62,915 nt of DNA, filler included, from Octopus bimaculoides (GCF_001194135.2; 7 parts of 7 records of this genome joined end to end with filler, not necessarily neighbours in it), one strand, 5' to 3'; positions 22,913 to 56,959 are shown, counted from the whole stretch's first letter. Notes: generated by a model from the letters alone, not told the origin. Numbers and translations: made by a program.

Positions 22913-22952
<40 letters not shown>

Positions 22953-23227
22953 ATTATGCCAATAATAATAAATACATACATTGGTTCAATAGCACTTCTT
23001 TAATTTTTTTTTTTTGTCAGTTGGTTAAATATCTAACCAACTAATTAATTGATTGTTTGTTCGGTTGTTTAATGTGATGATTCAACAATTAATTGGTTGT
23101 TTGTCAAAGTCCTTTTGTTGCTATTTCTAACCTCTTCAATGTTATACCCTCTCTATACATGGTAAGATTTATTTCAACAAACAATCTCCCATCTAGAACC
23201 TTGCAAACCAAAATACAAAACCCAGAT

Positions 23228-23267
<40 letters not shown>

Positions 23268-23624
23268 GTGCAGGTGTGGCTATGTGGTAAGAAGCTTGCT
23301 TCCCAACCACATGATTTTGGGTTCAGTCTCACTATGTGACACCTTAGGCAAGTGTCTTCTACTATAGCCTTGGGCTGACCAATGCCTTGTGAGTGGATTT
23401 GTGTGCATGTATGTGCATATGCATCTATGCATGTGTGTACACATGCACACTCACATGTGTATGCATGTGTGTATGTCTATGTGTGTGTGTGTATGTACGT
23501 GTGTGCCTTCATGTGTCTGTATGTGTGTGCACACACAGATGTCTGAATGTACATCTAAGCATACATACACACTCGTATAAGTATTGATGCATACACGCAG
23601 ATATGTGGGCATATACATGTACAT

Positions 23625-23709
<85 letters not shown>

Positions 23710-25404: not shown

Positions 25405-25797
25405 CTCTTTTACTTGTTTCAGTCATTTGACTGCAGCCTTGCTGGAGCACCACATTTAGTCGAGCAAATCGACCCCAGGACTTATTCTTTGTAAGCCTAG
25501 TACTTATTCTGTCGGTCTGTTTTGCCAAACCGCTAAGTTACAGAGATGCAAACACACCAGCATCAGTTGTCAAGCGATGTTGGGGGGACAAACACAGACA
25601 CACACGCACACACACAGACATATATATGCATATACATATATACGACAAGCTTCTTTCAGTTTCTGTCTACCAAATCCACTCACAAGGCTTTGGTTGGCCC
25701 GAGGCTATAGTAGAAGACACTTGCCCAAGGTGCCAAGCAGTGGAACTGAACCCTGAACCATGTGGTTGGTAAACGAGCTACTTACCGCACAGCCACT
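25405..25797 (-). mobile_element. SINE family A, full length
   Basis: Reverse complement of the family A consensus seen at 61825. Confidence 0.9.
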
Positions 25798-26673
25798 CAA
25801 TCTTTTGAATTATGATTTTTGTATCTTGATCTTACCTTGCAGTTCATTTGGAACAATAAGGTACCCAAATTCATTTTTATTAACATTTCCTGACTACCTC
25901 AGCCCATCTTCAAGATGTGGCTTCTATACTGTCACTTTTATAGTGGGCATCAACTTTAAGACTTTATAAAAAGAATACTGTTAATGTAGACATTACAGCC
26001 ATTAGAATGTTAGATACACGCACAAATATGTGTGTGTGTATGTATGTGTGTGTGTGTATGTGTGTGTGTATGTATGTGTGTGTGTGTATGTGTGTGTGTG
26101 TTAACATGAAAATGCACTTAAATTTCTTAAATTTTCTTTCATTTTTCCCACTGGTTTCATCACATTTATGATAATTATGAGTAAATCAAAGTGAATAACT
26201 ATCTATACTTATTTGTTTCCAAAATGTATTAATGTTAACATCAACTGATGTTGTACAACAGATTTTATTTAGATTCAGTCTGAATTTCTTAATAAATATA
26301 CTTCTTTTTGTTGTTCTTTGAAAATATTAGTTCAATTGGAAAACTATAAAGGATCAATGAGATTTATATGTTGTTAACCATTAACAAAACATACAGTAAT
26401 CTATGTGACTGTACTGAAACCTTGTTTAAATCTTTTATCGTTTTTCTTTGAGTTGTTTGAGTCATTGGAAAGTGGCCATACTGGAGCACTGCCTTAATGA
26501 AGTTTTAGTCGAATGAATCAACTCCAATACTTTTTTCTTTCTTTCTTTTTTTTTTTTTGCAAAGCCTGGTATTTATTCTATTGGTCTCTATTGCCGAACC
26601 ACTAAGTTACAGGGATGTAAACACACCAACATTTGTTGTCGAGAGGTGATGTGGGGACAAACACAGACACAAA

Positions 26674-26725
<52 letters not shown>

Positions 26726-26789
26726 TGTATATATATATTTATATAATATGCAATACATAACAAAGATGTTAAAATCAAGCACTGACTGT

Positions 26790-28730
26790 GCCTGGAACCG
26801 TTTTTGAAGTGAGGAAATATCTGGCACAGGGCCTGTCTCATTCTCTACCCTCACTATTACCTCTAGTATACATCTCTTCCTCAATGCCCACTCAATCACC
26901 TTCCTTGGAACTCTATCAAATGGCTTCTCAAGATCAACGAAGCACATGTACAACTCCTCCTTATCTCAGTATGCCACTTGCAGTCTCCTTACAACCAACA
27001 CTGCATCTATTGTCCCCCTTCCTGGCATAAAACCAAATTGCACCTTGTCCACATTCATCCTTTTCTGAATTCTCCTCTCCAACACCCTTTCTACTATCTT
27101 CATTGCATGCTCCAATAACTTCACTTCCCTATATGCCCCACAACTCATCGCATCCCCCTTCCCTTTCAAGATCAGTACTACCACACTTAGCGCCCAATCA
27201 TCTGACATTCCTCTTCCATCCAGCATACCCTGATGGAGCTCCATCATCACAACAGTCCCTATCTTTCTACTTGCAGTTATCATTTCCACACTTACTTCTG
27301 ATGGACCAGCTGCCTTTCCTGTTTTCATTTCCTTCATTGCCTCCACTACTTCTTCCCGACTAACCCTCTCCACTGGCCCCTTCACCACAGCAACTTCCAC
27401 CCTCTGATCCCATTCATTCTTCCCATTCATAATTCCCTCTATAAGCTCCTTCCAAACTATTCCCCTGTCTTTCTCCCTAAAATTCAACCTTCGATCACTC
27501 CTCCTCATACATCTTCCTCCCTCAACATCTCTTCCATCTTTTATCATAGAATTAATAAGCCTAAACACTATCTGGATTCTCATCCATCCCACTCAACCTC
27601 TCTTCAGCTTCCTTCCTCATAGATCTTGCAACCACCCTCTTTGCATGATTCTTTCTGTTATTATACCTGGCTTCCATTTGCTCAGTCCTGTTATTACATA
27701 AAGCTTTGTGCACTTCTTTCTTCCTCACCTCCTCCTTTCACCACCACGTATCTCCTTGATCTCTCCTACCCTTCGTTCTTCCACACACTTTGTCACATGC
27801 CTTTAGCACCCCTTCTTTAAAAGACTTCCACAAATCCGGTGCATCAATGCTTACCAATTTCCCAACTCNNNNNNNNNNCCAACTCTCCCCTCAAACCTTG
27901 CTCTTGTTTCTTCTTCCTTCAGTTTCCATGCCTTTCTCCTCTCAACCATTCCCTTTCTCACACACTTTTTATCTTTCTTCTTATCCAAGTCAGCAACCAC
28001 CAACCTGTGCTGTAACTCACCTGCTATTGTCTTCTCATCTCTGAGATACTTTCTGTTTTTCCTGCCAACCAACATGAAATCAATCTCTATCTCATTCCCT
28101 CCTGCGCTGAATGTCACCTTCCTTTTCTCTGCTTTCCTAAACCACATGTTAACCACACACAACTCTTTCTCATCACAAAACTCCAACAGCATCATTCCTT
28201 CCACATTTCTCTCTGCAATTCCCTTTCCCACCATGCACAGCCTCAAATCTCTGGATCCATTTCCCAGCATGTCCATTAAAATCACCTATGCCCAAAACTA
28301 ATCCATTGACCTTATGTAAGTCACACTCATTTGCCATTTCATCAAAGAACTGCTCTTTCTCAACGATCCCTCTTTCCCTTTGCAGACCATACCCACAAAT
28401 CACCCTCAACACTTCTTCAAATACTAATGTTACTATCATCACTCTGTCACTCTTTCTCCTGACCTCCACCACCTTCTCACAGATTTTTTCCTTCACCAAA
28501 ACTCTCACACTTCCAGTCCCCTTGCTATTTCCCAACCACTACAAATTGTACCTTCTTCCCTTGACCCCCACAAATCTTGCACCTTGGCCCCCTCCACCTA
28601 GCCTCCTGCACATAGCACACATCCACCCTCCTCTTCCTCAATTCCTCACACACCTCAGTTCCCCTTCCACGCAGACTGCCTACATTCTAACTTCCCAACT
28701 TCACTCAAGCTTCTCCTCAGGCATTATATC
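26790..28730 (-). mobile_element. RTE-clade LINE: APE endonuclease plus N-terminal RT, 3'-truncated and frameshifted
   Basis: APE motif GDFNGH. RT motifs MKTGKAAGP, KGKGD, KLLEHAMKIVERVLE, QFGFMPGRGTIDA and FVDLEKPFDRVP, spread over several frames. Confidence 0.95.
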
Positions 28731-29449
28731 ATGTGTTTGTGTGTGTGTGTGTGCATTAAGTATGTATTACATTACAGTGTGTTAAATCAAGTCCCACTCT
28801 TACCCCATGTGTTATTCATGCAGTAAATAATAGATGGTGTTGTTAGCATCGTCACTGTAGTCATTTAACCCCCTAGTTCAGCTTTAATTGTGCAGGTTCA
28901 TGATCAAAGATGCTGCAGTTGTGATCATCTCACTTTTTTTTTCCGGGTTATGTAGGATAATATTATTCAATGTGTCCTTTCTGTTTGTTCTTTCTTTGTT
29001 TTTGTCTTCTTTTTTTTTGTAAGCCAGTAAGGTGCGATTTGAAAGAGATTTCGCTATTATTACTTGCAGGTTGGGTGACTGCATACAGATTCACTCTATG
29101 GTTTGTGAGCATTTGTAGTATTCAACTTCAATGGATTCACCTATTTTCTCAATTATCTTATTTTTGTGATTTTTTATTTATTTATTTATATGTCTGTGAA
29201 TGTGAATTTTTACATAGCTAACATTATACAAAAGTTTTGCAACACTTGATGGTAAGATTGCTGCATCAAGTGAAATTGATGAACCGATTACATGTCTTAA
29301 TGGATTTCCACTTTGTAGTATTTCTAATGCTTCCTTTATAACAGGAATTCTATCATCTTCAAGGAAATGGCATCTAGCTGGAATGGCTTTCAATGAAAAC
29401 TTTTTTTGTTTCTTCAAAATGTTGATCAAATTGTGTAATGGTTCTTAAC

Positions 29450-30780
29450 CTGAAAGCATTATCACGAAACTTATATTAATATTCAAGCAGCTCATCATTC
29501 ATGCATACTTTCCATACTTCTGCTGATATATATCCAAGCCTGTAGCCTTATTGCTTTGTGTCAATTTGATTGAATCTTTCACCTCCTGCATTGTAAAATT
29601 ACCAACAACAATAGGCAATGGGTCAGATACCTTGTCAATATTTCCCTCAACTATCAAGGATGGTTGACCAAGTAACTTAACAAAATTTTCCTGTCCCTAA
29701 CTCCACACTTTCCTCAGGGCTTTCAACTTCTATTGTACCCTGGTTGGTTTTCTTTCTTCCAGTTATTTCACGGATAACATTCCATACAAGTTTAGCTTTA
29801 CAATTCAAGTGGGTGTTATACAGTTGTTCTATTTTCTACTTAATGCAGCTTTCTTGTTCCTGTCCCTAACTCCACAATTTCCTCATGGCTTTCAGCTTCT
29901 ATCGTACCCTGGTTGGTTTTCTTTCTTCCAGTAATTTCACTGATAAAACTCCAAGCAAGCTTAGCTTTACAATTCAAGTGGGCATTATGCAGTTCTATTT
30001 TCTACTTAATGCAGCTTTCTTGTTCCTTGATATGTTAGTTCTACCTGATACCACAATTTCTGCTATAAATGTCCTCTACATAAACATGGAAGCTCAAGTC
30101 CTCTCTTCTGATGGTGAATACTGAGTTTTTTCAAATTCTAGCAGGTCTCCTTCAAGGTGACACATTAGCACCATATCTTTTCATAATAACTCTAGACTTT
30201 GTTCTTTAGGGAAGCCATTGTTATTTAGAAAGATCTCAGCTTTATATTGACACAAAGAAGTCAGCAAAACTCACCAATTGTTATATGTGAGACAAATTTC
30301 AATAGCTCTTTTATTAAATACCATTGATCAAGTTCAAAAATCTCTTCATAAAGTCAAATACTTTGTTTGAAAAATGGGTCTACACATAAATGTTACCAAG
30401 ACAGAGTACATGTCACTTAACCAAGATGGAAATCTTGTCACACTGGATGGTAGAATACTAAATTGAACTGATGATTTTCTATATTTGGGCAGCTGGATAA
30501 GTTCATAAAAAAAGGATATTGATATTAGACTGCAGTGAACAAAATGGAAAAGATATGGCAGTCAGATCTACCCAGAAAGAAATCAAAATATCATTCATTA
30601 GAACATTTGTTGAGTTAGTGTTATCGTATGGATCAGATACATGGACTCTCACAAGCAGTTGAGAAGAAACTAACCAGATGGTGAATACACTAAAATGCTT
30701 AGGTTTGTACAAAACATAAACTGATATCAACGTATTACAAATTAAAGTTTATATAGATTTGCAAGGCATTGTTAGAGAAG
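29450..30780. mobile_element. Second LINE (RTE-like) with an inverted 5' segment and a ~170-bp internal tandem duplication
   Basis: Minus strand 30030 to 29450 gives linker and early RT (FTMQEVKDSIK...NKATGLD). Plus strand from ~30030 gives later RT (AINVLY, GLLQGDTLAPYLFII, YLGSWI, YGSDTWTL). Confidence 0.8.
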
Positions 30781-31471
30781 TAAGCAGGAAATTATACACA
30801 AGCTCATATTGTGGGCACTAACTTACAGGAGATGCAGTAGATGCAGATCTACTCAGATATTCATTGATGAACTCTCAGACAATACAAACCTCAGCAAGGA
30901 GCAATTGTCTTTATTATTAAATTAATGTAGAATATTGGTTTCAAATTTCACCAAAAAGCCAGCAATTTTCAGGGGAGGTGATAAGTTGATTACATTGACT
31001 CCAGGGCTTAACTGGTACTTATATCATTTACTCCGAAAGAATGATAGGCAAAGTCGACCTCAGCAGAATTTGAACTTGGAACTTAAGGACAAACGAAATG
31101 TCACCAAGAATTCTGCCTGGCACAGTAATGATTCTGCCAGCTTGCTACCTTAATTATTGTAAAATATAAATAAATTTTAAAAATTACCACAAGCTTATAA
31201 TATATATATTCATTATTATCATCATTTATTGTCCATCTTCATGCTGGCATGGGCTGAACAGCTTAGCAGGATCCAGTAAGCTGAATGATTGCACCTCAGT
31301 TTCTATGAATTGATGTAATTCTTAGCATCAACCACTTTACAAAGTGTACTGAGTGCTTTCTGTCATGCTACCAGCACTAGTAAGGTTACCATGTAACTTG
31401 CAACTCAAAGAAAAAGGAATCCTTCTTTAACTGAATGCATACTCTAAGCTATAGAGCAGTAGAGTATCTAA

Positions 31472-31629
31472 AGAATGTTAGTTATGGCTAGTTCATAGGG
31501 TTACCCAGGATTTCAAGTCCATAAGGTTACCCACTGGCCATTATGGTCTGATGAGACGTGTGTAATGCTAAGCACTTTATGGACTCAAAATCCTAGGTAA
31601 CCCTATGAACTGGACATAACTAACATTCT
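31472..31629. repeat. Foldback element with 54-bp arms and CTGATGAG in the loop
   Basis: Arms at 31472-31525 and 31576-31629 are complementary with a handful of mismatches. Confidence 0.9.
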
Positions 31630-31928
31630 CTAAATATATATATATATGTGCTAATGTAGATAGAGTTTACAACCAAACTATGTCTACATCTGCTTATTCC
31701 AGTATTCTGAATCTGTATGTAGATGTTATATTTGTGTGAGGTATGCACTCGAGGTGAAAATTCTTAGAAATGTTTTTTGCAGAGTAATATATATCAATAC
31801 AGGTAATTAGAAAACGTGTTTGGTTTTATTTATTCCCCATTACACATATTTCATTTGCTAGTGGGAGTTATCAAGCTGTACATGTAGGAGAAACATGTAA
31901 GATATATCAAATTAGAAATTCTTCATTC

Positions 31929-31967
<39 letters not shown>

Positions 31968-32141
31968 TCATCATCATCATCGTTTAACGTCCGCTTTCCA
32001 TGCTAGCATGGGTTGGACGATTTGACTGAGGACTGGTGAAACCGGATGGCAACACCAGGTTCCAATCTAATTTGGCAGAGTTTCTATAGCTGGATGCCCT
32101 TCCTAACGCCAACCACTCAGAGAGTGTAGTGGGTGCTTTTA

Positions 32142-33059
32142 CACAAGATGGTATCAAAGAGTTCCAGGACAAGTTATGTTTAATAAAAGAATAACTTATT
32201 TACTTTAGTTTTAACATCACGTCCTTTGAAATAGTCACCTTGCACAGCAATACACCAGTTCCACCATTCCTGCGACTTTTGAAATCCGACCTGGAAGTCA
32301 TTTTCTATAAATGAGTTGAGGACCTTCTGTGATTCACACTTGATCTTGATAACAGTGTTAAAATGGTGACCTTTGAGCTGCCTTTTCATCTTGAGGAAGA
32401 GATGGAAGTCTGCAGGTGTTAAATCTGGTGAATAAGGCAGGTTGCAGAAGTGATACCATGTTGTTTTCGGTAAGAAACTCATGAGTGAGGAGAGCTTGGT
32501 GATAAGGTGCAATTGTTGTCATGAAAAATCCAATTCTTCATGCTCCACAGATCCAGTTACCTTCGTCAAATGTCCTCCCCCAAATGCTTCAAAGCATTGT
32601 TGATTGTCCTTCGATGATCCCCATGCATAACCTGATGAATTTTCTCCACATTTCCAGAGGGCAACGTTTGTGGCAGGTCTTCCAGATCATTCATCATCTT
32701 CCAGGGATGTTCTTCTACCTTTGAAGCCCTTGTGTGATTTAAAACATTGCATACAACCCATTGCCTCACCACCATAAGTTTATCAAAGCATGCTCAATGT
32801 CTCTATAGCAGATTTCCTACGTTAAACACAAAATTTCACATTGGCTCTTTGTTCCAACTTCCTGTCCATGACTAAAATTGCAGACTGCACTATACGTGTG
32901 GTCACAGAAACACAGATTTCACAACTTGCATAGTAAACACAGTAACTTGGCACACTGCCTTATGAAGGTCACTGCTAGCTCTTACTGCACATGCAACCAT
33001 GTGCTGTCTTCTGTTGGTGCATGACAGTACTAGTCCAAGAACTTTTTGATACCACTATG
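32142..33059 (-). mobile_element. Internally deleted mariner element with TIRs
   Basis: PYSPDLTPADFHLF and GDYF motifs, plus an HTH-region fragment. ~28-bp imperfect TIRs (tggtatcaaaga/aagttc). Confidence 0.9.
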
Positions 33060-33139
33060 CAACTCAATTACAAGATGAAGAAACTAACTACAAGGCGCTG
33101 AGCCTTTTAGTTATTTGCTGTAATTAGAGAAGACACATC

Positions 33140-33490
33140 AAGCTAAGTAAAATCGCAGCCATCCATATGTACAGGCTTGTCCTTTATGGCTGTGCCCCCC
33201 ACTCCCTCTCCCAGGCAAGAGATTTCTGATTTGCAGATGCCAGTGCCCTGCAAAAGGCATTCGTGCCAGTGCCTCATAAAGTGCACTCATGCTGGTGTAA
33301 CATAAAAGCAACCATGCTGCTAGCACATAAAAAGCACCCAGCACACACTGTAAGGTGGTTGACATTAGCAAGAGCATTTAGCCATAGAAACTAAGTCAAA
33401 ACAGACAATTGGAGCCTGGACAGCTGTTTGACTGCCAGCTCCTGCCAAACCATCCAACCCATACCAGCATGGAAAACGGACATTAATTTG
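33140..33490 (+). mobile_element. SINE with a Meta-like central domain and (GAT)n tail, decayed
   Basis: Related to the copies at 31966-32140, 49590-49886, 52700-53020 and 55200-55490 (ggcgttaggaagggcatccagctgtagaa core). Confidence 0.7.
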
Positions 33491-34312
33491 AGGATGAGGA
33501 TGAATAATCTTGATGAAATACATGGTTATCCATATTGATTTATTTTCTTTGACTGTTTTGTTAAATTGCTTTAACAGGAAGCATTATATATATGTTGTGG
33601 AAAGATTCCGACCCCCACTCCTACAAAAATGACTAAAAGTGAACTGACACATTGCTATAAAATAAAGATCAGTGAGTAATTGGTTGAGAAGCAGTTCCCT
33701 GTGAGCTGTTGGTAGAGAGCATTTAACCTCATATAATAGTAATCGTAGTGCATTGTGTGAATACTTTCTTTCCCCCTGCTTTGTTAAATTATTTATCCAG
33801 TACTAGGATATAAAAATATGTTCCCAAATTTATCTTTAAATTGCTGTGGTGCAGTGTCTGATCCACTCATATAATCAAAGAAGTTAAATCAATCAGAAAA
33901 GCCAAACATTTCGTCAAGATCGTTCAGTTGCATTATGAAGATCTGAAATGATGTGTATGAAAAATGATAGCTGTATAAAATAATAATGTGAAAGGAAGCA
34001 AGTGGAAGGAGCATGTGAAAAACAGAAGACACAGAAGGAACTGGTGAAATTTGATCTCAGGATGTTCCTCATGAAGGAGATGACAAAGTCCATAACAAGT
34101 GGCAAGGCACTAGTGTGTTGAAACAAAACTGTCCACCCATGTCTGCTTGGAAAAACAGATATAAACAGATGAGGATAATGACGACGGTGACGATGATGAT
34201 GGTGAAGATGACACAGATCATACCGACAACAATAATGAAATTCATGATGATGTACAGGAGTTTATGATATATGTGTATGTATATGTGTGTGTGAGCATGT
34301 CTGTCTGCCATA

Positions 34313-34506
34313 GCACTTGCAAGAAACTAGCTGATTCAATGCATGACCATATAAAAGTGGTAACTGGTGCTAAAGAAGGGTCAACCAGATATTAAAACTA
34401 ATGTATATTGTGAAATATACCATAATCTACCATGCACATGAGTTTCATTAACATTGAGATAGCAGAACCCCAAAACATTGGGGTGGCCTAATACTTTTGG
34501 CCAAAG

Positions 34507-34512
<6 letters not shown>
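34313..34512 (+). mobile_element. Tc1-like 3' end and TIR
   Basis: CKKLADSM...GAKEGSTRY* followed by ...cctaatacttttggccaaagctgTA. Confidence 0.7.
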
Positions 34513-34544
<32 letters not shown>

Positions 34545-35918
34545 ATGTATGTGTGTGTGTATATATATATATATGTATGTATATATNNNNNNNNNNNNNN
34601 NNNNNNNNNNNNNNNNNNNNNNNNNNNNNNNNNNNNNNNNNNNNNNNNNNNNNNNNNNNNNNNNNNNNNNNNNNNNNNNNNNNNNNNNNNNNNNNNNNNN
34701 NNNNNNNNNNNNNNNNNNNNNNNNNNNNNNNNNNNNNNNNNNNNNNNNNNNNNNNNNNNNNNNNNNNNNNNNNNNNNNNNNNNNNNNNNNNNNNNNNNNN
34801 NNNNNNNNNNNNNNNNNNNNNNNNNNNNNNNNNNNNNNNNNNNNNNNNNNNNNNNNNNNNNNNNNNNNNNNNNNNNNNNNNNNNNNNNNNNNNNNNNNNN
34901 NNNNNNNNNNNNNNNNNNNNNNNNNNNNNNNNNNNNNNNNNNNNNNNNNNNNNNNNNNNNNNNNNNNNNNNNNNNNNNNNNNNNNNNNNNNNNNNNNNNN
35001 NNNNNNNNNNNNNNNNNNNNNNNNNNNNNNNNNNNNNNNNNNNNNNNNNNNNNNNNNNNNNNNNNNNNNNNNNNNNNNNNNNNNATATATATATATATAT
35101 ATATAAATGTATATATTAATTTAATCAGGAATGGTAAAACAGTGCTAATAACCCTTGCTGATACTGACAAGCTGGTAAGGTTGATGTGATTAATGTTCAT
35201 CTTGATGTTCGAAAGAATTGGGTGGGGGAGATATTCCTACAGTAGTGCTTCTAAATGCTTTTTCTGTTTTCCCATTCTCATCTACCAGTTTACAATCCTA
35301 ATGTCCACCCCATTATGTATGCCAAAAAAAAAGTAGTATTATATACAACAGGACTTACTGCATAACATTAACAAGTTTATATTAAGTTTACATTGGCAGT
35401 GTTAACATCAATACTAAGAAATATTGTACTCCGTCAGTTTCAACGACAAGGGTTCCAGTTGATCTGATCATCCGAAGATCCTGCTTGTGAAATTAACATG
35501 CAAGAGACTGAACACTCCACAGACACATGTACCTTCAACGTAGTCCTCAGGGAGATTCAATGTGACACAGTGCATGACAAGGCTGGCCCTTTGAAATACA
35601 TGTACTACTCGTTTTTGCCCTCTGAGTGGACTGGAACAATGTGAGATACGGTGCCTTGCTCAAGGACATAATGTGTCATCAGGAATTGAACTCATGACCT
35701 TATAATCACGAGCTGAATACCCTAACCTCTAAGCCATGTGCCTTCACATTAAAGAATATATATCTAGCAAAAACAGTTTGAATATTGATAAAGAATTTTT
35801 TGATGTAAAAAATAATCCCTTGATGCAATTCGCAAATAGCCTGCTAGAATCTTAGTTTTTGTTTGGAAGAGAATTAGGGGGAATTTTTCCCATGGTTACG
35901 AATTGTAGTAGTTTAGAG

Positions 35919-45681: not shown

Positions 45682-45767
<86 letters not shown>

Positions 45768-46639
45768 ATGTCAACTCTGTTATTCTTTCGACCAGCAATG
45801 ACTGATTTTATTAGAAGAATATATACAAACAGGAGTACCAGATGGGGCTTGAAACACATCCCCTCATATATAGAGAGCAGTGGCCATGCTGGGGCATCGC
45901 TTTGAAGGGTTTAGTTGGGTAAAATAACCACAGCACATAGGTTTTTTTTTGTTGTTTTTTTTTAAGCCTGGTACTTATTTTATCAGACTCTTTTGCTGAA
46001 CCACTAAGTTACAGGAATGTAAACAAACCAACACCAGTNNNNNNNNNNNNNNNNNNNNNNNNNNNNNNNNNNNNNNNNNNNNNNNNNNNNNNNNNNNNNN
46101 NNNNNNNNNNNNNNNNNNNNNNNNNNNNNNNNNNNNNNGGGTTGCCAATTTACATTAATAAAAAAAATAATAATAATTTCAAACTGGGTAGGAATTGAAA
46201 CCAACAATTTTAATCTAAATTTTAACAGCGTGTGATTAGAGTGGTTTCCCTTGATACTAAAAAACTTGTTTTTAAAAATCATTTTTTGAACCATTGTTTA
46301 AAGAACATTTTCTATTACTTCCAGTCTTGTATGTAAATGCGTTTATGTCTATACATGCATGCATACATACATACATATATATTATTTTATTCTTCTAATT
46401 TTTTACTTGTTTCAGTCATTTGACTGCGGCCATGCCGGAGCATCGCCTTGAATGGATTTTAATCAAACAAGTTAACCTGAGGAGTTGTTTTTTTTTTTAG
46501 ACTAGTATCATTCTTTCTCTTTCTCTCTCTCTTTCCCACTCTCTCTCTCTCTCTCTCTCTGTCTCTCTGCAATATAGGGGTAGTTTATCCTGTTCAGGCC
46601 ATATTATTAGCATTATTCTGCGATTGAGAATTTTAAAAA

Positions 46640-46777
46640 ATCATTTCTTTAACTTTCTAAAAGACATCTCAATGCTTCTAAAAGCAAACATCTGACAATG
46701 ACGCTGTAGGAAGTTTCTTGGAGTCCCAAACAAAAGAGTTCTTCTACGCCGGGATAATGGCACTTCAGCACCACTGG
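46640..46777 (+). mobile_element. mariner transposase C-terminal fragment
   Basis: FLESQTKEFFYAGIMALQHHW matches the mariner FF..GI.ALQH.W motif. Confidence 0.65.
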
Positions 46778-47022
46778 NNNNNNNNNNNNNNNNNNNNNNN
46801 NNNNNNNNNNNNNNNNNNNNNNNNNNNNNNNNNNNNNNNNNNNNNNNNNNNNNNNNNNNNNNNNNNNNNNNNNNNNNNNNNNNNNNNNNNNNNNNNNNNN
46901 NNNNNNNNNNNNNNNNNNNNNNNNNNNNNNNNNNNNNNNNNNNNNNNNNNNNNNNNNNNNNNNNNNNNNNNNNNNNNNNNNNNNNNNNNNNNNNNNNNNN
47001 NNNNNNNNNNNNNNNNNNNNNN

Positions 47023-47094
<72 letters not shown>

Positions 47095-47238
47095 ACACGC
47101 ATACAGAGATACATACATATATATATACTAATCAATACTGCTACTTTATTTTAATGACCCCCATAAAGGTGAAATGCATTTTTGACTTTGGCAGGAATTG
47201 AACTAAGAAAGAGCACTGTCACAACATGGACAACTTAC

Positions 47239-47421
47239 CTTTGGTCCCGATGTAATGATTGTTGTTCAACTTGATTTTGGTCAACCAAATGAGTAAGATG
47301 TACTCCAGGAAGAGTTTGTCACCCTTGGCTATATCGGTCAGCTGATCAGTGAGTTGGTCAAGTGGCCTGAGTGTGATAGACTGGACGGTGAACGAAGATG
47401 GTTGCGGTGGTTGTACAAAGC
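47239..47421 (-). CDS. Exon f: GFVQPPQPSSFTVQSITLRPLDQLTDQLTDIAKGDKLFLEYILLIWLTKIKLNNNHYIGTK (degenerate catalytic-loop region)
   Basis: Acceptor ccttttttttcccag|, donor AAG|GTAAGT, 183 nt (phase 1 to 1), fully open. Aligns by eye with FAM20 'IFDFLMGNMDRHHY'. Confidence 0.85.
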
Positions 47422-47469
47422 CTGGGAAAAAAAAGGTTGAACATGAGAATGGTATGGTGAAAAAAGAAC

Positions 47470-47639
47470 AGTATGGTGGTGGTGGTAGTAGTGATGGCAG
47501 TTGTAGTCGTAGCGATGTTGGCAGTAGTGGTGGTGATGGCCACGATGATGGTACTCTCGGGAATTACAACGATGATGGTGATGGTGGTGACAGAGGAGCA
47601 GTAGCATTACTTTTGAGGATGGTATTGGTGGGAGTGCAT

Positions 47640-47676
<37 letters not shown>

Positions 47677-47940
47677 AAGAGATGTGGTAGTAGTGGTGGT
47701 AATAGAGAGCATATGATGGAGGGGTGATGGTGATGGCAGTTGTGGTGGTAGCAGTAGTGAGGATGGTGTTGGTGGAGATTGTGGTGGTGGTGGTGGAATG
47801 GTATGTAAAACAAAAAAAAAAAAAAAANNNNNNNNNNNNNNNNNNNNNNNNNNNNNNNNNNNNNNNNNNNNNNNNNNNNNNNNNNNNNNNNNNNNNNNNN
47901 NNNNNNACCACCACCACCACCACCACCACCACCACCACCA
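47470..47940. repeat. Compound (GGT/GAT/AGT)n low-complexity tract inside the intron between exons e and f
   Basis: Seen directly. Confidence 0.9.
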
Positions 47941-47969
47941 CCCTCCATGTCTGCAAGTCGGTCACTCAC

Positions 47970-48093
47970 CTTCTATGGAACCATCAGCGCCAGCGAAGTC
48001 CTGCAACTGTTGCAAATGCTGCTTGTTCTTGGTGATGACTTGTAGAGTTGAAGCGGTCAGAACCATTTTGGACACTGGGGGTGTATGATACAG
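47970..48093 (-). CDS. Exon e: LYHTPPVSKMVLTASTLQVITKNKQHLQQLQDFAGADGSIE
   Basis: Acceptor tctttgttttcag|, donor AAG|GTGAGT, 124 nt (phase 0 to 1). Completes LDRLLG-L..TPPV (FAM20C 'RRVPPVAGR'). GSIEG resembles FAM20C 'DQIEGSL'. Confidence 0.9.
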
Positions 48094-48459
48094 CTGAAAA
48101 CAAAGACAGCAGTCAACATTATTATACACACATAGCATATATATACATACATACACATACATGTATATATACATCATCGTCATCATCTAGAGTCTCTTTC
48201 TGTGCTGGCATGGGTTGGACGGTTTGACGCAGAGCTGGCTAGCAGCGAGCCATCCAGACCCCCAGCTGTCTGTTTTGGGAAGGGTTTCTGTGGCTGGATG
48301 CCCTTCCTAATGCCAACCACTTCACAGAATGAGCTGGGTGCTTTTTACGTGCCACCAGCATGGGTGTGTTTATGCAACACTGACACAGGTACTTTCGAAG
48401 TGGCACCCGAAGGGACAAGCCTGTATAAACACACCAACATTGGTTGTCAAATGATACAT

Positions 48460-48490
<31 letters not shown>

Positions 48491-49292
48491 CAACAGGCTT
48501 CTTTCTGTTTCCATGTATCAAATCCACTCACAAGACTTTGGTTGGGCCAAGGCTACAGTGGAAGACACTTACCCAAGGTGCCATGCAGTGGGACTGAACC
48601 CGGGACCATGTGGTTGGGAAACAAGCTTCTTATTTCTTTATTGCCCACAAGGGGCTAAACATAGAGGGGACAAACAAGGACAGACAAAGGGATTAAGTCG
48701 ATTACATCGATCCCAGTACGCAACTGGTACTTAATTTATCGACCCCCGAAAGGATGAAAGGCAAAGNNNNNNNNNNNNNNNNNNNNNNNNNNNNNNNNNN
48801 NNNNNNNNNNNNNNNNNNNNNNNNNNNNNNNNNNNNNNNNNNNNNNNNNNNNNNNNNNNNNNNNNNNNNNNNNNNNNNNNNNNNNNNNNNNNNNNNNNNN
48901 NNNNNNNNNNNNNNNNNNNNNNNNNNNNNNNNNNNNNNNNNNNNNNNNNNNNNNNNNNNNNNNNNNNNNNNNNNNNNNNNNNNNNNNNNNNNNNNNNNNN
49001 NNNNNNNNNNNNNNNNGCTAACAAGCTTCTTACCACACAGCCATGCCTGCACCAATATGTGTGTGTGTGTGTGTGTGTGTACATGTGGGGATGTATTAGA
49101 AAGAGCATCCAGTCATAGAAACCATACCGGAGTTGACAACAGAGTTTGATGCAGACCTCTGGTTCATCAGCTTTTGTCAAACCATTCAGCCCATGCTAGC
49201 ATGCGAAGACGATGGAAGAAGATGACGATGACGATGATGACGATGACAAGGATGAGATATTGTAAAAAAACATGGACAGATTGAAACCTTAC

Positions 49293-49525
49293 CCCTAAGA
49301 GCCTGTCCAGCTTATAGACAATCATGCTACCCACATAGGATGATTTGCTGTTTTGCTGTCCCTTAAACACCACGGTGCCCATATGAGCCCCTTTTTCAGG
49401 GGATATAGGTTCGGAAAGATCGGTCCAGTGGAGATTGAGGAGGAACTGTCCGGTGCTGCTCACCTCAAACGCTCTGTCAAGTGTGGCATGATGCATCATG
49501 GTTAACCATTGGCTTTCTGTAATTC
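49293..49525 (-). CDS. Exon d: N-lobe of a FAM20/four-jointed/FAM198-type kinase fold (...GTVVFKGQQNSKSSYVGSMIVYKLDRLLG)
   Basis: Acceptor ctctccgtctgcag|, donor GGG|GTAAGG, 233 nt (phase 1 to 0). FK and YKLDRLLG correspond to the FAM20C 'FKP...AFHLDRILDF' and FAM198 'AFHLDRILGL' motifs. Confidence 0.9.
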
Positions 49526-50560
49526 CTGCAGACGGAGAGAATAGAGAGAGAGATTATCATATATTATTTACATACATTCACACACACACATCATCATCAT
49601 CATCATCATCATCATCGTTTAACGTCCGCTTTCCATGCTAGCATGGGTTGGACGACTTGACTGAGGACTGGTGAAACCGGATGGCAACACCAGGCTCCAA
49701 TCTAAATTTGGCAGAGTTTCTACAGCTGGATGCCCTTCCTAACGCCAACCACTGAGAGAGTGTGGTGGGTGCTTTTACGTGTCACCCGCACGAAAACGGC
49801 CACGCTCGAAATGGTGTCTTTTATGTGCCACCCGCACAAGAGCCAGTCCAGGGGCACTGGCAACGATCTCGCTTGAAAACCCTACANNNNNNNNNNNNNN
49901 NNNNNNNNNNNNNNNNNNNNNNNNNNNNNNNNNNNNNNNNNNNNNNNNNNNNNNNNNNNNNNNNNNNNNNNNNNNNNNNNNNNNNNNNNNNNNNNNNNNN
50001 NNNNNNNNNNNNNNNNNNNNNNNNNNNNNNNNNNNNNNNNNNNNNNNNNNNNNNNNNNNNNNNNNNNNNNNNNNNNNNNNNNNNNNNNNNNNNNNNNNNN
50101 NNNNNNNNNNNNNNTATATATATATATATATATATATATCAAACCATGCCAAAACTGACCCCACCAGAGCTGGTGCACTCAGGCCACTCCGCAGGTAGTT
50201 GCTGTTTGGAAGGGCGTCCAGCTATGAAAACCATCCCAAAACAGACACAGAAGTACGGTGTAGGCTTCTGCCTGGTCATCTCTCTTGTCAAACCGTCCAA
50301 CCCATGCCAGCATGGAAAGCAGGTGTTAAATGATGATGATAATGAGACGTATATATGCGCAGAGAGAGGGAGAGGATGATGATGATCTCAGGGAAGAAAT
50401 GGGGGTGGCTTACTGTCACATCCAAAGACGTGCCCTGAGCCATGCAAATGAAATTTCTAGCAATTACCATGGTCTTTGGTGTCGTCAGCAGTGAAGGTGA
50501 TGTCATGTGACCCGGATTTGAAACTCTGAGTTCTTTAATGACAACTTACAGATTGTCCTA

Positions 50561-50599
<39 letters not shown>

Positions 50600-50934
50600 T
50601 ATGGTTAACAAAAGCCAGGATGTGTGGCATTCAGTTACTCAATAAATGAAAAACGCATTAAATACAAGGAGCAATAGATACATAGTCAGACAGACAGATA
50701 GAAAGAGAGACAGACAGATAGATAGATAGATACACAGACAGACCAGAAGGTAGATAGACAGACTGACAGACAGATAGAAAGAGAGACTGACAGATAGATA
50801 GATGGATGGATAGACAGACAGACAGGTAAGTAGCCAAACAAGGAGAGAGAGAGAGAGAAGGGACAGACAGACAAATAGATAGATAGAACAGGAAGTTAGA
50901 GGAGACAAGGAGAGAGCGAGAAAAGTGAACAAAC

Positions 50935-51180
50935 CTCGTAGTCCAATGTGGTGCCTGAGTCTCTTCTCCCTGATATTTCTGGCCACCTGGTGGACAGACT
51001 GACTACGAGACACACAATCGACCGTGTTGAATCCATGGACAACCGGGGTCATTGGTGCCGGGTGGTTGTTGCTTTTACGACGACTGCCCAGCAGGCTGGA
51101 GACTTTGATGAAGAACGTGGCACCAGTGTTCCGGTGAATGGTGGACTTGGACGAGTTCTTGAAGATTACTGTCAGCAAGG
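50935..51180 (-). CDS. PKDCC: PKDCC-like exon c: end of the PKDCC tail (LLTVIFKNSSKSTIHRNTGATFFIK) followed by a read-through linker ending REKRLRHHIGLR
   Basis: Acceptor tttccttctttcag|, donor GAG|GTTTGT, 246 nt (phase 1 to 1). The first 25 aa parallel the vertebrate terminal 'LVFFKTG..QVVPD..KTTYVK'. No stop codon follows. Confidence 0.85.
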
Positions 51181-51214
51181 CTGAAAGAAGGAAAAAGAAA
51201 GCAATCAAACATTA

Positions 51215-51670
51215 ATAATAATAATAATAATAATCCTTTCTATTATAGGCACAAAGCCCAAAATTTAGGGGGATAATTGATTATATCAATCCACAGTACT
51301 CAACTGGTACTTAATTTATCAACCCCTTGGCAGAATTTGAACTCAGAACATGACGGTAGACAAAATACCACTAAGCATTTTGCCCGGTGTGCTAACGATT
51401 CTGCCATCTCACCGCCTTAATAATAATAATAATAATAATAATAATCCTTTTTACTACAGGCACAAGGCCTGAAATTTTTGAGGAAGGGACAAGTTGATTA
51501 CATCAACCCCAGTGTTTCACTGGTACTTTATTGTCCCTGAAAGCATAAAAGACAAAGTCAACCTCAGTGGGATTTGAACTCTGAATGTAGCGATGGGGAA
51601 AATGCCGCTAACCCTTTCCTCCAGTGTGCTCACAATTCTGGCAGCTCACCGTCTTAATAATAATAATAAT
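51215..51670 (-). mobile_element. Two tandem family B SINEs embedded in (TAA)n
   Basis: Each unit ends ccgcctt/ccgtctt next to taataat runs. Confidence 0.85.
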
Positions 51671-51908
51671 AATAGTAATAGTTTCAAATATGTGTTTATG
51701 GATGTTTGAAGATAACCAAACCAAATTTTCATCATTTTGAGTCACTCACCCAATGAGTAATTCTGCCAAATTTGGTGAAAATCCGTTCAGCCGTTTTCCA
51801 GGAAATTTGCAAACACACAGACAAAGACAAGTGATTACTATACCCTGCTTTTGCATATGCCCGCAGGGTAAGAAATCAAGAAAGAACAAAGAACCGTTTG
51901 TGACTCAC

Positions 51909-52101
51909 TTTTTTCATCGGGCTGTCCGGAGAGGATGACAAAAGCCTTGCAGACAGGATCTTGGGTGCATATGAGCTTGGCATGGGAGACATTGTAGGCT
52001 GTCTTCACACAACCCCATGAGGCACGAGAGAATGGACACGTATAATCAAAGATGCCAGGAATGTTCGAAGAATTGTAGCGGAAATAACGGACATCGTTAT
52101 C
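51909..52101 (-). CDS. PKDCC: PKDCC/VLK-like exon b: Cys-containing C-terminal (PAN/apple-like) domain, DNDVRYFRYNSSNIPGIFDYTCPFSRASWGCVKTAYNVSHAKLICTQDPVCKAFVILSGQPDEK
   Basis: Acceptor tctcctgcag|, donor AA|GTGAGT, 193 nt (phase 0 to 1). Cys spacing and motifs (IP..DY.C, GC...yN...A..C.....C.AFV) match the vertebrate PKDCC tail as I recall it ([36 protein letters not shown]). Confidence 0.9.
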
Positions 52102-54104
52102 CTGCAGGAGACAAAATGAAAGGAAAAGAATAATGAGATAAAGAAGAAAAATACAAAAAAAAAGAATTATGATTAAAAAATTCTGTTTTGTTTTGAAATT
52201 CCTGACAACTACCACCTCGGGCCACTGAATCCCATGGAGCAGAATAGGTTTTGGAGCAACAGAGCTTACTGTGGACAGAAACCAATTCTATCTTATTTTT
52301 TATTGTCTTTTTTTTTTTTTTCAGTATAGTTGTGTAGTTAAGAAGCTCATTTTGCGACCACATGGTTCTGGGTTCAGTCCCACTGCATGGCACCTTAGGA
52401 AAGTGTTGCTTCTACCTACCACAGCCCCAGGCCAACTAATGTCTCGTCAATGGATTTAGCAAATGGAAACTGTGTCAAAGCCTTCTGTACACACGCACAC
52501 ATGTATTCTACTCTTTTACTTGTTTCAGGCATTTGACTGCAGCCATGCTGGGGACTGTCACATTAAGTTGACAGTATACAACTACTTCATGGCAAAATTA
52601 TATAAAGTAAATATGTTGGGCCTCATTCCTTTCGAGCATTGGGCCTCACAAAGACAAAGTGGTTGTGTTCCTTTCAAGTGTTGGGTGACACGGAGGCAAT
52701 GACCAAGACCTTTGGCATTAAATCGTGCTTGAGAAGAAGACCCATCAAGCCGAGCAAAACCACAATCGTAGCAGATACCGGTGTCGCGCAAATTGGCACC
52801 CGTGCCAGTGGCATGTGAACACACCCCAGTGTCACACAAATGTCACCCATGCCGGTGGCACATAAAAGCACCCATTACACTCTCGGAGCGGTTGGCATTA
52901 GGAAGGGGCATCCAGCTGTAGAAAACCATGCCAAATCAGACTGGAGTCTGGTGCAGCCTTCCAGTCAATAGTCCAACCCATGCCAGCATGGACAACGGAT
53001 GTTAAATGATGATGATGATACTGATAATGATGGCAGCAAACTTATTTTACCAAATACTTCATTATTTTCAAAATTAATTAAAAATTTAAAAAAATGACAT
53101 ATTTCAACAGAAATATCCTAGTTTTATAATTCAGCTTCCTGATCTTTCCATCATCATCATCATCATCANNNNNNNNNNNNNNNNNNNNNNNNNNNNNNNN
53201 NNNNNNNNNNNNNNNNNNNNNNNNNNNNNNNNNNNNNNNNNNNNNNNNNNNNNNNNNNNNNNNNNNNNNNNNNNNNNNNNNNNNNNNNNNNNNNNNNNNN
53301 NNNNNNNNNNNNNNNNNNNNNNNNNNNNNNNNNNNNNNNNNNNNNNNNNNNNNNNNNNNNNNNNNNNNNNNNNNNNNNNNNNNNNNNNNNNNNNNNNNNN
53401 NNNNNNNNNNNNNNNNNNNNNNNNNNNNNNNNNNNNNNNNNNNNNNNNNNNNNNNNNNNNNNNNNNNNNNNNNNNNNNNNNNNNNNNNNNNNNNNNNNNN
53501 NNNNNNNNNNNNNNNNNNNNNNNNNNNNNNNNNNNNNNNNNNNNNNNNNNNNNNNNNNNNNNNNNNNNNNNNNNNNNNNNNNNNNNNNNNNNNNNNNNNN
53601 NNNNNNNNNNNNNNNNNNNNNNNNNNNNNNNNNNNNNNNNNNNNNNNNNNNNNNNNNNNNNNNNNNNNNNNNNNNNNNNNNNNNNNNNNNNNNNNNNNNN
53701 NNNNNNNNNNNNNNNNNNNNNNNNNNNNNNNNNNNNNNNNNNNNNNNNNNNNNNNNNNNNNNNNNNNNNNNNNNNNNNNNNNNNNNNNNNNNNNNNNNNN
53801 NNNNNNNNNNNNNNNNNNNNNNNNNNNNNNNNNNNNNNNNNNNNNNNNNNNNNNNNNNNNNNNNNNNNNNNNNNNNNNNNNNNNNNNNNNNNNNNNNNNN
53901 NNNNNNNNNNNNNNNNNNNNNNNNNNNNNNNNNNNNNNNNNNNNNNNNNNNNNNNNNNNNNNNNNNNNNNNNNNNNNNNNNNNNNNNNNNNNNNNNNNNN
54001 NNNNNNNNNNNNNNNNNNNNNNNNNNNNNNNNNNNNNNNNNNNNNNNNNNNNNNNNNNNNNNNNNNNNNNNNNNNNNNNNNNNNNNNNNNNNNNNNNNNN
54101 NNNN

Positions 54105-54330
54105 TCGAAAATCCTACGAAGGCCAGTCAGGCGGTACTGGCAACGGCCACGCTCAAAATGGTGCATCTCATGTGCCACCCGCACAAGAGCCAGTCCAGGG
54201 GCACTGGCAACGATCTCGCTCGAAAATCCTACGAAGGCCAGTCAGGCGGTACTGGCAACGGCCACGCTCAAAATGGTGTATTTTACGTGCCACCCGCACA
54301 AGAGCCAGTCAGGCGGTACTGGCAACAAAA
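54105..54330. repeat. 115-bp tandem repeat (two copies visible, continuing into a gap), internal region of the Meta-like SINE
   Basis: Unit starts tcgaaaatcc at 54105 and 54220. The same unit occurs at 49790-49886. Confidence 0.85.
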
Positions 54331-54772
54331 AAAAAAAACAATTTATGATAATAAGGTCAAAAGGGAATGAACAGAAACCGAAAAACCACAGCCAAATGCA
54401 TAACCGAGAACTACAGGTCTTAGAAATTTGCACCACATGCAGTAAACAGCATAACTAGATGCAAGTGCATGCGTATTACAGATGATGCATTACATATATG
54501 CAACAGCAACAAAACACTGCACACAAAGGTGCAGAGGACTATGCACCATAGAGCAGCAAAAGCATGCAACAAAAATTATAGGAATAATTCCTGGAATTCG
54601 GTGGGGACGGCGGGGGTGGGGTTCAAGTCAAATAACATCGACCCCCAAAAGGATGAAAGGCAAAGTCGACCTCAGTGGGAATTGAACTCAGAACGTAAAC
54701 ACGGACGAAATACCACTAAGAATTTTGCCCACCGTGCCTACAATTTTGCCAGCTCACAGCCTTAATAATAAC

Positions 54773-54809
<37 letters not shown>

Positions 54810-54814
54810 TGTTC

Positions 54815-55150
54815 CTCTAAAAGAAATGGAGAAACTTTCAAAATACAAAGACCTGGAAATAGAGGTAACTCGAATGTGGAACCTAAAAACAGAAACAATT
54901 CCTATCATAGTGGGTGCCTTAGGTATAATAAAAAAATATTCAGACAAATACATAACAAAAACACCAGGACTTACAAATATATATAACATACAAAAAATTG
55001 CACTACTGGGCACTGCACACATCCTACGCAAAACACTTTCAATTCAGTAACCATAAGAGCACCACAGCAAACCACAGCACATACCCAAGGCGCACAGAGC
55101 TGTGCTCGGTAGTGAAGTGAAAGCACGTTATAAAAATAAAACTACTGAAT
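54815..55150 (+). mobile_element. 5'-truncated R4/Dong-like LINE 3' end flanked by (TAA)n
   Basis: EKLSKYKDLEIEVTRMW...IPIIVGALG...IQKIALLGTAHILRK* followed by a UTR. Confidence 0.9.
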
Positions 55151-55829
55151 AATAATAATAATAATAATAATTCCTATCATAAAACTACTGAATACTCATC
55201 ATCATCATCATCATCATCGTTGTCGTTTAACGTCCGCTTTCCATGCTAGCATGGGTTGAATGATTTGACTGAGGACTGGTGAAACCAGATGGCAACACCA
55301 GGCTCCAATCTAAATTNNNNNNNNNNGATTTGACTGAGGACTGGTGAAACCAGATGGCAACACCAGGCTCCAATCTAAATTTGGCAGAGTTTCTACAGCT
55401 GGATGCCCTTCCTAACGCCAACCACTCAGAGAGTGCAGTGGGTGCCTTTTTACGTGCCACCCACACGAAGGCCAGACAGGCGGTACTGGCAACGGTACTG
55501 AATACTAATAATAATAATCCTTTCTACTAAAGGCACAAGGCCTGAAATTTGGGGGAGGGGACCAGTTGATTACATCAACCACAGTATTCAACTGGTACTT
55601 AATTTATCGACACCGAAAGGATGAAAAGCCACTAAGCATTTTCCCCAGGGTGCTAATGATTCTGCCAGCTCACTTCCTTTATTGTCGTTGGCGTCCTTTT
55701 GTCTCAGGAGACAATGATGGAGTTGCACATAAACTAATCCAGTCTGGTTTTTTACATATCATGTCTTCTCCTTTGCGCAGGCCTGGGCTAGATGTAAGAA
55801 AACCCTGGGTAGCCCAATCACCATGCACT

Positions 55830-56470
55830 GCTCTCTCACTCAATAATAATGACAATAGGTCCACGAATTGGAGGGTCAACCTTAGGAATGAGCATGTGTC
55901 TCCACTGCGCTGTATTTGTAACAGAGTGGATGAAACCATTGCCCACATTACATACAAATACCCTAGACTTGCCCAGAACTACTACGAGTTGTGGTGAAAT
56001 GATGAGATGGCAAAAGTGCTACTTAGGAAACTGTGCAAAAAGTGGGGTCTAGGGAAAGACAAGATGTAACATGAAGGCGGCGATCAGGCAGAATCGTTAG
56101 CACGTCGGGCGAAATGCTTAGCGGTATTTCGCCTGCCGTTACGTTCTGAGTTCAAATTCCGCCGAGGTCGACTTTGCCTTTCATCCTTTCGGGGTCGATA
56201 AATTAAGTATCAGTTACGCACTGGTATCGATGTAATCGACTTAATCCCTTTATCTGTCCTTGTTTGTCCCCTCTATGTTTAGCCCCTTGTGGGCAGTAAA
56301 GAAAATAAGATGTAACATGAGCACATACTGCAGAGAGTGGCAGAGTCGGAGAGCTGCAAAACCCGCTGGGATTTCCCAAGCCAAACAGATAAGGTGGTAG
56401 AGCATAAAAGACCAGACCTAGTGGTGGTCAACAAGATGCACCAGATGTGCTATATAAACCCAGGGTTAAA

Positions 56471-56502
<32 letters not shown>

Positions 56503-56720
56503 TTGGAAGGCACCAAGAGGATATAAAAGGAAATCGGAAGAGAGTGCCCAGAAGAACTGTTACAAAAGGTTGGCCTCCTTGGCACGGCCAGAATAATTAG
56601 GAGAATATTGGATGGTTGGAAAGAACAGATAGCATGGTACCATGAGCTGCAGGCAGCAAACCTGCTATGCATGCAAGACTCCAGGAGTTCCAACAAAACT
56701 TGAGATAAAAAGAATAAATA
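55830..56720 (+). mobile_element. R4/Dong-like remnant carrying a nested family B SINE (56075-56306, 14-bp TSD aagatgtaacatga)
   Basis: HITYKYPRLAQ, WDFPSQTDKVVEHKRPDLVVV and LLQKVGLLGTARII motifs. TSD at 56061-56074 and 56307-56320. Confidence 0.85.
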
Positions 56721-56760
56721 ATAATAAATGATAACAACAACAACAACAATAATAATAATG

Positions 56761-56805
<45 letters not shown>

Positions 56806-56834
56806 GCAGAAAACAAAACAAAAGAGACAAAAAC

Positions 56835-56959
56835 CTTCCATTCCATAATTTCTTCACCTCCGACAGAGTTCCCAGCAGCATCGCCACCATGGTCTGACTG
56901 GGAATTGAACCCTTGCATCTGGGCATTGTTTTTCTGATAGTGTCGATGGCGACCACTTC
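56835..56959 (-). CDS. PKDCC: PKDCC/VLK-like gene, exon a (5' part lost in gap): end of kinase domain plus linker, (R)SGRHRHYQKNNAQMQGFNSQSDHGGDAAGNSVGGEEIMEWK
   Basis: Open frame ending at donor AAG|GTTTTT in phase 0, matching the next exon. RSG resembles the 'YRSG' that closes the vertebrate PKDCC kinase domain. Truncated by the N-gap at 56960. Confidence 0.7.

Follow-up and report, generated by a model that had tools for sequence, protein, structure and literature searches.

A degenerate Fam20-like domain in an octopus PKDCC-like protein, probably a non-catalytic binding module

Protein kinases of the secretory pathway are few, and over half of them are uncharacterised (PMC5865150). Closest to the case described here are the Fam20 proteins (PDB 5xom, 4kqa and 5yh3), among which Fam20B is a xylosylkinase, Fam20C is the Golgi casein kinase and FAM20A, a protein of the same fold, activates FAM20C (PMC5865150). 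In these proteins the beta3 Lys forms its ion pair with a Glu that precedes the canonical alphaC Glu by five residues; the former, the Glu of the ERH motif, is E213 of ceFam20 and E306 of the human protein, the latter E218 and E311, respectively (PMC5865150). The Fam20A–Fam20C and Fam20C–Fam20C interfaces are built on two motifs, the Kbeta3–Kalpha3 loop (D/N-F/H-F-Y-F-S/T-D) and C-D/S-Y-Y-C (PMC5865150). FAM20A is a vertebrate paralogue without an orthologue in invertebrates, and the Fam20-related secretory proteins FAM198/GASK1 (PF15051) have no demonstrated kinase activity (PMC7948968). Two other enzymes are relevant, the secreted tyrosine kinase PKDCC/VLK and POMK (SgK196), the latter lacking every canonical residue in sequence yet being an active glycan kinase by virtue of active-site migration (PMC5142810). 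Here we analyze a stretch of Octopus bimaculoides DNA (GCF_001194135.2) of 62,915 nucleotides, composed of seven parts joined with filler and called the window below, in which the range 47239–49525 corresponds exactly to three minus-strand exons (Ed to Ef) encoding the N-lobe of a Fam20-fold domain together with the first half of its C-lobe. A first-pass annotation of this range had suggested a second kinase domain, apparently catalytically dead, that could serve as a built-in regulator of a VLK kinase.

The gene is located in the piece 45682–56959, AT-rich animal DNA with many repeats and seven N gaps, in which six minus-strand exons (Ea–Ef) were placed, all with AG/GT borders. The spliced peptide is 100% identical to the uncharacterised O. 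bimaculoides protein A0A0L8FJ42 (360 residues) and 94% identical to its O. sinensis orthologue, LOC115231021 (438 residues). Exon Ed (49293–49525, minus) encodes the N-lobe, in which the GG loop is degraded to TG and which also includes the Lys-bearing beta3 strand, an alphaC-like helix and LDRLLG; in the structural model, the strand and the helix occupy residues 200–206 and 213–227. Exon Ee (47970–48093, minus; LYHTPP...DGSIE) lacks the C-x-Y-Y-C insert of Fam20 and ends at an invariant Gly aligned to the Fam20 EGS motif. Exon Ef (47239–47421, minus) contributes the C-lobe helix LFLEYILLIWL, with an invariant Glu codon at 47303–47305, and the degenerate catalytic loop KIKLNNNHYIGTK (LNNNHY at 47252–47269), in which neither Asp nor Glu occurs.

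Searches of Pfam and PDB sequences with the single octopus peptide or its orthologue gave no match, and only the family profile reached Fam20. An exhaustive phmmer search provided 67 relatives. A 22-sequence profile matched, among PDB sequences, Fam20B with an expectation value (E) of 3.5e-7, followed by C. elegans Fam20 (8e-6), FAM20A (4e-5) and FAM20C (3e-3), the aligned region running from beta3 through LDRxLG. Since a profile of the C-lobe only gave no significant match to the PDB, the catalytic loop was examined by profile–profile alignment (hhalign) against four real Fam20 sequences taken from the PDB alignments; a homology search seeded with Fam20 fragments had returned only fragments below 180 residues, of no use for the C-lobe. 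The hhalign comparison gave 96.5% probability and E of 9.6e-10 over 216 columns reaching the C-terminus. The AlphaFold model of the O. sinensis orthologue (mean local confidence score, pLDDT, 85.1; predicted template modelling score, pTM, 0.74) agreed with this assignment, as the best 27 Foldseek matches in the PDB were all Fam20 structures (E from 4e-10 to 2e-7, identity 11–15%), PI4KII being the next at 2e-4. On this modelled structure and the profiles, the domain belongs to the Fam20-type atypical kinase fold.

Much of the Fam20 scaffold has been retained. The octopus domain has in common with Fam20 the F-K of beta3, LDRxLGF...PP (in the family LDRxLG...P), the hinge Gly (E/x-G), the C-lobe helix with its acidic residue (here Glu), the xxRxF strand (xDxAF in the family), the terminal helix ...C(I/V)xxxG and the secretory-pathway setting, and four Cys are conserved. 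Nevertheless, Pfam PF06702 was matched at E≤10 neither by the peptide encoded in the window nor by its orthologue or any one of 22 relatives. Assignment to GASK1/FAM198 was rejected, as only 5 of the 22 weakly matched PF15051, with the best E of 0.024, far below the gathering score.

The domain departs from Fam20 in several respects: both Glu residues, the catalytic Asp of DRHH and the metal-binding Asp of DNG are missing, and the Kbeta3–Kalpha3 loop as well as the C-x-Y-Y-C insert are deleted. All motifs quoted in the first-pass annotation were located on the minus strand, VVFKG at 49359–49373, SMIVYKLDR at 49302–49328 and the catalytic-loop string IWLTKIKLNNNHY at 47252–47290, and the FAM20C strings to which they had been compared are genuine, since PDB 5yh3_C reads ...YERHNAEIAAFHLDRILDF... 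and ...DFLMGNMDRHHYE.... The beta3 Lys is indeed kept in octopus (codon AAG, 49362–49364), where VVFK stands opposite VVFKP of Fam20B; it is seen in cephalopods, yet only in 5 of 31 family members. The proposed replacement of Glu by Ser was borne out by hhalign and extends to both Glu positions: within SSYVGS (49326–49343, minus), one Ser (49341–49343) takes the E306 ion-pair position and another (49326–49328) the canonical E311 position. For the catalytic motif, the absence of Asp held, as under either alignment neither Asp nor Glu occurs at residues 310–338 of the orthologue and no Asp of the loop is conserved family-wide, whereas the pairing of the catalytic Asp with Asn appeared only in the ungapped alignment; hhalign put DRHH of FAM20C opposite a four-residue gap. 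The metal-binding Asp (the equivalent of that in DFG) aligned by hhalign with Asn337 of O. sinensis. No alignment placed Asp and Glu at the catalytic positions.

Other residues in the vicinity have been kept by the family: Glu309 in 30 of 31 members, Lys330 in 25/30, the GG loop in 25–26/30 and, two residues past the lost metal-binding Asp, a near-invariant Asp339 (27 of 31). Even this set is partly eroded in cephalopods, with TG for the GG loop in octopus, Tyr in place of the family His214, and Ala at 339 in the cuttlefish relative (GGANAF). FAM20A likewise has a Fam20 fold judged inactive through replacement of an active-site acidic residue and nevertheless conserved. However, it keeps DRHH and DNA/GRGF (DNxRGF) and differs mainly by Gln at E306, so the octopus domain, having lost all four acidic residues, is far more degenerate.

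Comparison of O. bimaculoides and O. sinensis over the exons of the Fam20-like domain gave the ratio of non-synonymous to synonymous substitution rates (dN/dS) of 0.137 (22 synonymous and 12 non-synonymous differences), and 0.146 over the whole comparison; the domain is maintained by purifying selection. For a Fam20-like domain that is conserved by selection in spite of missing the canonical catalytic residues, the term pseudokinase, applied on sequence grounds, seems a fair call.

The octopus protein corresponds to the C-terminal half of most of its relatives, which have 840–995 residues. Their N-terminal half comprises a signal anchor and a kinase domain for which Pfam PIP49_C gave E values as low as 1e-13 and PK_Tyr_Ser-Thr a weak match. 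In the complete layout, a type II signal anchor and the PKDCC/POMK-like kinase domain are followed by a disordered stretch of about 100 residues that leads to a PAN-like Cys domain, behind which the Fam20-like domain is located. A relative of 929 residues shows 54% identity to the O. sinensis orthologue across 99% of the orthologue length; we call it the cuttlefish relative because its cluster includes a Sepia pharaonis protein named PKDCC. Foldseek found Fam20 structures nearest to its C-terminal body as well. Colinear with this relative is a 484-residue PKDCC-type protein, which matches it in BLASTP over the kinase domain (E of 7e-17) and the PAN-like domain (3e-13) and then ends, therefore the family can be described as PKDCC-like proteins with an added Fam20-like domain of about 320 residues. 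The PAN-like region was matched by Foldseek to the plasminogen PAN domain over 94 columns. Of these parts, the PAN-like domain lies within the window (exons Eb and Ec), the eukaryotic protein kinase (ePK) domain is seen in relatives only, and octopus itself shows only the linker exon preceding the annotated start.

Gastropods (Haliotis, Aplysia, Bulinus, Candidula, Babylonia, Patella and Lottia), bivalves (Ylistrum, Sinanodonta and Solemya), amphioxus and the sponge Oscarella pearsei all contributed members, and no vertebrate was found among the family members of identifiable source. Few of them bear automatic PKDCC or PKDCC-like names. Full-text literature searches retrieved no description of a PKDCC–Fam20 fusion. 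The family is old and unannotated, has no Pfam model and is apparently undescribed.

Shorter forms of 470–545 residues were also noticed, in which a signal peptide precedes a PAN-like and a Fam20-like domain. In the hemichordate Ptychodera there are forms with only an anchor and the Fam20-like domain; these keep the Lys of WFKV, the Glu of E-[KR]-H and D-[ST]-D-R-A-F, hence their ATP site is closer to being intact than that of octopus.

The N-terminal kinase domain of the relatives is itself unusual. It retains DLD and, mostly, the beta3 Lys and alphaC Glu, and in nearly all members the HRD Asp position is taken by Lys (the usual case), Gly, Ser or Asn, the position of the catalytic-loop Lys being taken by Asn or Ser. 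The cuttlefish relative has SIRLQKLNSEDF (LQKLNSEDF) where the PKDCC-type protein has SIAINDFRRQQF (AINDFRRQQF), and a profile alignment to a plant kinase placed HRD opposite l-a-K. The likeness to PKDCC covers the N-terminal half and the PAN-like domain, and the differences lie in this loop and in the added Fam20 fold. POMK was the best solved-structure match for the N-terminal domain of the relatives, also in the Foldseek search, the SPLG and DLD motifs being common to both. Unlike the family, POMK keeps a catalytic Asp (MCD) where the family has Lys, Gly or Ser, and it has no Fam20-like domain. With the catalytic Asp and Lys replaced in the N-terminal domain, neither of the two kinase folds in the protein looks canonical. 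The full-length AlphaFold model showed three confident bodies and a disordered stretch at residues 400–502 (pTM 0.43); when searched for interdomain contacts, it gave no confident arrangement and no fixed contact.

We propose that octopus has a PKDCC-like protein of the secretory pathway whose C-terminal part is the Fam20-like domain, most likely residing in the Golgi lumen or the extracellular space. Without the Glu pair and the Asp residues for catalysis and metal binding, this domain would most likely be incapable of phosphate transfer and may act as a folded module for binding proteins, glycans or, possibly, nucleotides. In our judgement, the probable explanation is a degenerate Fam20-fold domain with which an ancient PKDCC-like secretory protein binds its ligands and which has no catalytic function, and a scaffolding or ligand-recruiting role is plausible. 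Several points weigh against this explanation. The example of POMK demonstrates that a kinase called dead by its sequence may be active; the family-kept GG loop, Glu309, Lys330 and Asp339 could make up an unusual site; residue positions were assigned by sequence alignment and not by superposition in three dimensions. Moreover, Asn337 and Asp339 were read from O. sinensis and cuttlefish relatives, their exon lying beyond the edge of the piece, the N-terminal half of the protein is outside the piece and was likewise read from relatives, and any binding partner or ligand is putative.

The first-pass annotation suggested a domain acting in the manner of FAM20A, that is a tethered pseudokinase activating the VLK/PKDCC domain of the same polypeptide, or recruiting substrates to it. 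The tether was correctly foreseen, as full-length relatives do carry the domain behind a PKDCC/VLK-type kinase domain, and the fusion of the two from sponge to amphioxus argues for a shared function, in line with the conservation of the domain despite its lost catalytic residues and with the same-fold precedent of FAM20A and FAM20C (PMC5865150). However, that kinase domain has neither the HRD Asp nor the catalytic-loop Lys, hence there may be no conventional kinase for the Fam20-like domain to activate. Both dimer-interface motifs of Fam20 fall in deletions of the family (a gap of 12 residues in the profile–PDB alignment and of 20 residues in hhalign), and about 100 disordered residues and the PAN domain separate the two halves, for which the full-length model predicted no fixed contact. 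The partner of FAM20A is another Fam20 fold and not an ePK domain, so that a Fam20-type face-to-face dimer is not simply transferable to an ePK/POMK-like partner. The allosteric activator is therefore not supported, and we regard it as unlikely. An atypical active enzyme, with a migrated site as in POMK (PMC5142810) or with changed chemistry based on the GG loop, Glu309, Lys330 and Asp339, would account for the strong purifying selection and for the high conservation of these four elements. Against it stand the erosion of the same set in cephalopods and the lack of a conserved candidate base in the catalytic loop, which make such activity improbable for the octopus domain. There is a similarly small chance that the whole sponge-to-amphioxus family represents a new Fam20-fold enzyme, e.g., a modifier of glycans or an unusual protein modifier, next to a similarly rewired PKDCC-like domain.

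Two further explanations concern the integrity and identity of the gene rather than its mode of action. The many N gaps and the annotated O. bimaculoides model, wrong at both ends, might point to a decaying pseudogene or to unrelated exons joined in a gapped assembly. Five exons with intact frames and AG/GT borders, of lengths identical in a gap-free O. sinensis contig, dN/dS of 0.14 and colinearity with the 929-residue cuttlefish relative rule this out for practical purposes and leave it a very slight probability. Even less probable is an ordinary active Fam20B/C orthologue that has been misaligned. The fold and the LDRxLG motif are shared with Fam20, but none of the 22 members matched PF06702, identity is as low as 11–15%, the loop has no acidic residue and the domain architecture differs; the catalytic positions in hhalign together with the missing PF06702 match led us to reject it. 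Should the domain be inert, conserved pseudokinases of the Fam20 fold would gain a second example, far older than the first; should it prove active, it would add another case of active-site migration. Either way, the family joins PKDCC/POMK-like and Fam20-like folds in one luminal protein, both without the canonical catalytic Asp, and invertebrate PKDCC-like annotations hide a large extra domain.

Two assembly gaps fall within the range of interest, at 48767–49016 in the Ed/Ee intron and at 47828–47906 in the Ee/Ef intron, and neither affects the coding sequence. Splice phases agree across both (0 to 0 for Ed/Ee and 1 to 1 for Ee/Ef). On the O. sinensis orthologue contig, with no N, the five exons recur unchanged in length and splice dinucleotides, their nucleotide identity being 91–95%, and the O. 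sinensis protein and the 929-residue cuttlefish relative span both junctions without added residues. No coding sequence has been lost at the gaps and the reading frame is continuous. The introns themselves are 6–7 times longer in O. sinensis: Ed/Ee (48094–49292) has 1.2 kb here versus 8.05 kb there (contig 22771–30821), and Ee/Ef (47422–47969) has 0.55 kb versus 3.7 kb (contig 30946–34659). Therefore, the gaps probably hide collapsed repeats and their estimated lengths are probably large underestimates.

Upstream of the Fam20-like exons, exon Ec (50935–51180, minus; ...CVSRSQSVHQVARNIREKRLRHHIGLRG) completes the PAN-like domain and continues through a low-confidence linker into the helices with which the Fam20-like domain opens; the model has pLDDT below 50 at residues 99–113 and helices at 121–146, and Cys124 and Glu140 are near-invariant across the family. 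The PAN-like Cys domain begins in exon Eb (51909–52101, minus; DNDVRYFRYNSSNIPGIFDYTC...PDEK). Exon Ea (56835–56959, minus; ...GGEEIMEWK) is the 3'-terminal portion of a long linker exon, and its frame stays open to the edge of the piece. In O. sinensis, the Ea frame is a single open reading frame (ORF) extending about 600 nt upstream (contig ~4790–5389) and matching residues 383–446 of the cuttlefish relative, i.e., the linker after the kinase domain, therefore the annotated start codons are internal Met codons; the O. sinensis model also begins at one (MEWK). The octopus models are thus 5'-truncated, and the gene extends 5' into the linker after the kinase domain. At the other end of A0A0L8FJ42, the C-terminus GKLSML* stems from reading past the Ef donor into intronic sequence (47218–47238). 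This model is thus incorrect at its start as well as its end, and the gene models of octopus need repair. A tblastn search across the piece found neither of the last two exons (orthologue residues 332–438).

Several features of the non-coding part of the piece were also recorded. In the Ee/Ef intron, a GGT/AGT-rich low-complexity tract with poly-A (47470–47800) lies on one side of the gap 47828–47906 and its complement, (ACC)n, follows at 47907–47940, the alternatives being an inverted arrangement and an artefact of the assembly; long ORFs seen at this tract are low-complexity and intronic. About 55 nt (GATTTGACTGAGGACTGGTGAAACCAGATGGCAACACCAGGCTCCAATCTAAATT) occur on both sides of the 10-N gap 55317–55326 (55260–55383), which looks like an unmerged scaffolding overlap and not a real duplication. 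Dispersed repeat families resembling short interspersed elements (SINEs), often ending in (AAT)n and present in both orientations, fill the introns (48560–48760, 49580–49880, 51200–51680, 52340–53000, 54100–54800, 55190–55680 and 56070–56310), and ARAGORN found no tRNA genes in these repeat-rich introns. The Ea/Eb intron also contains two short plus-strand ORFs, 54826–55050 (MEKLSKYKDLEIEVTRMWNLK...IPIIVGALG...) and 56337–56600 (...EHKRPDLVVVNK...), which resemble fragments of a retrotransposon ORF.

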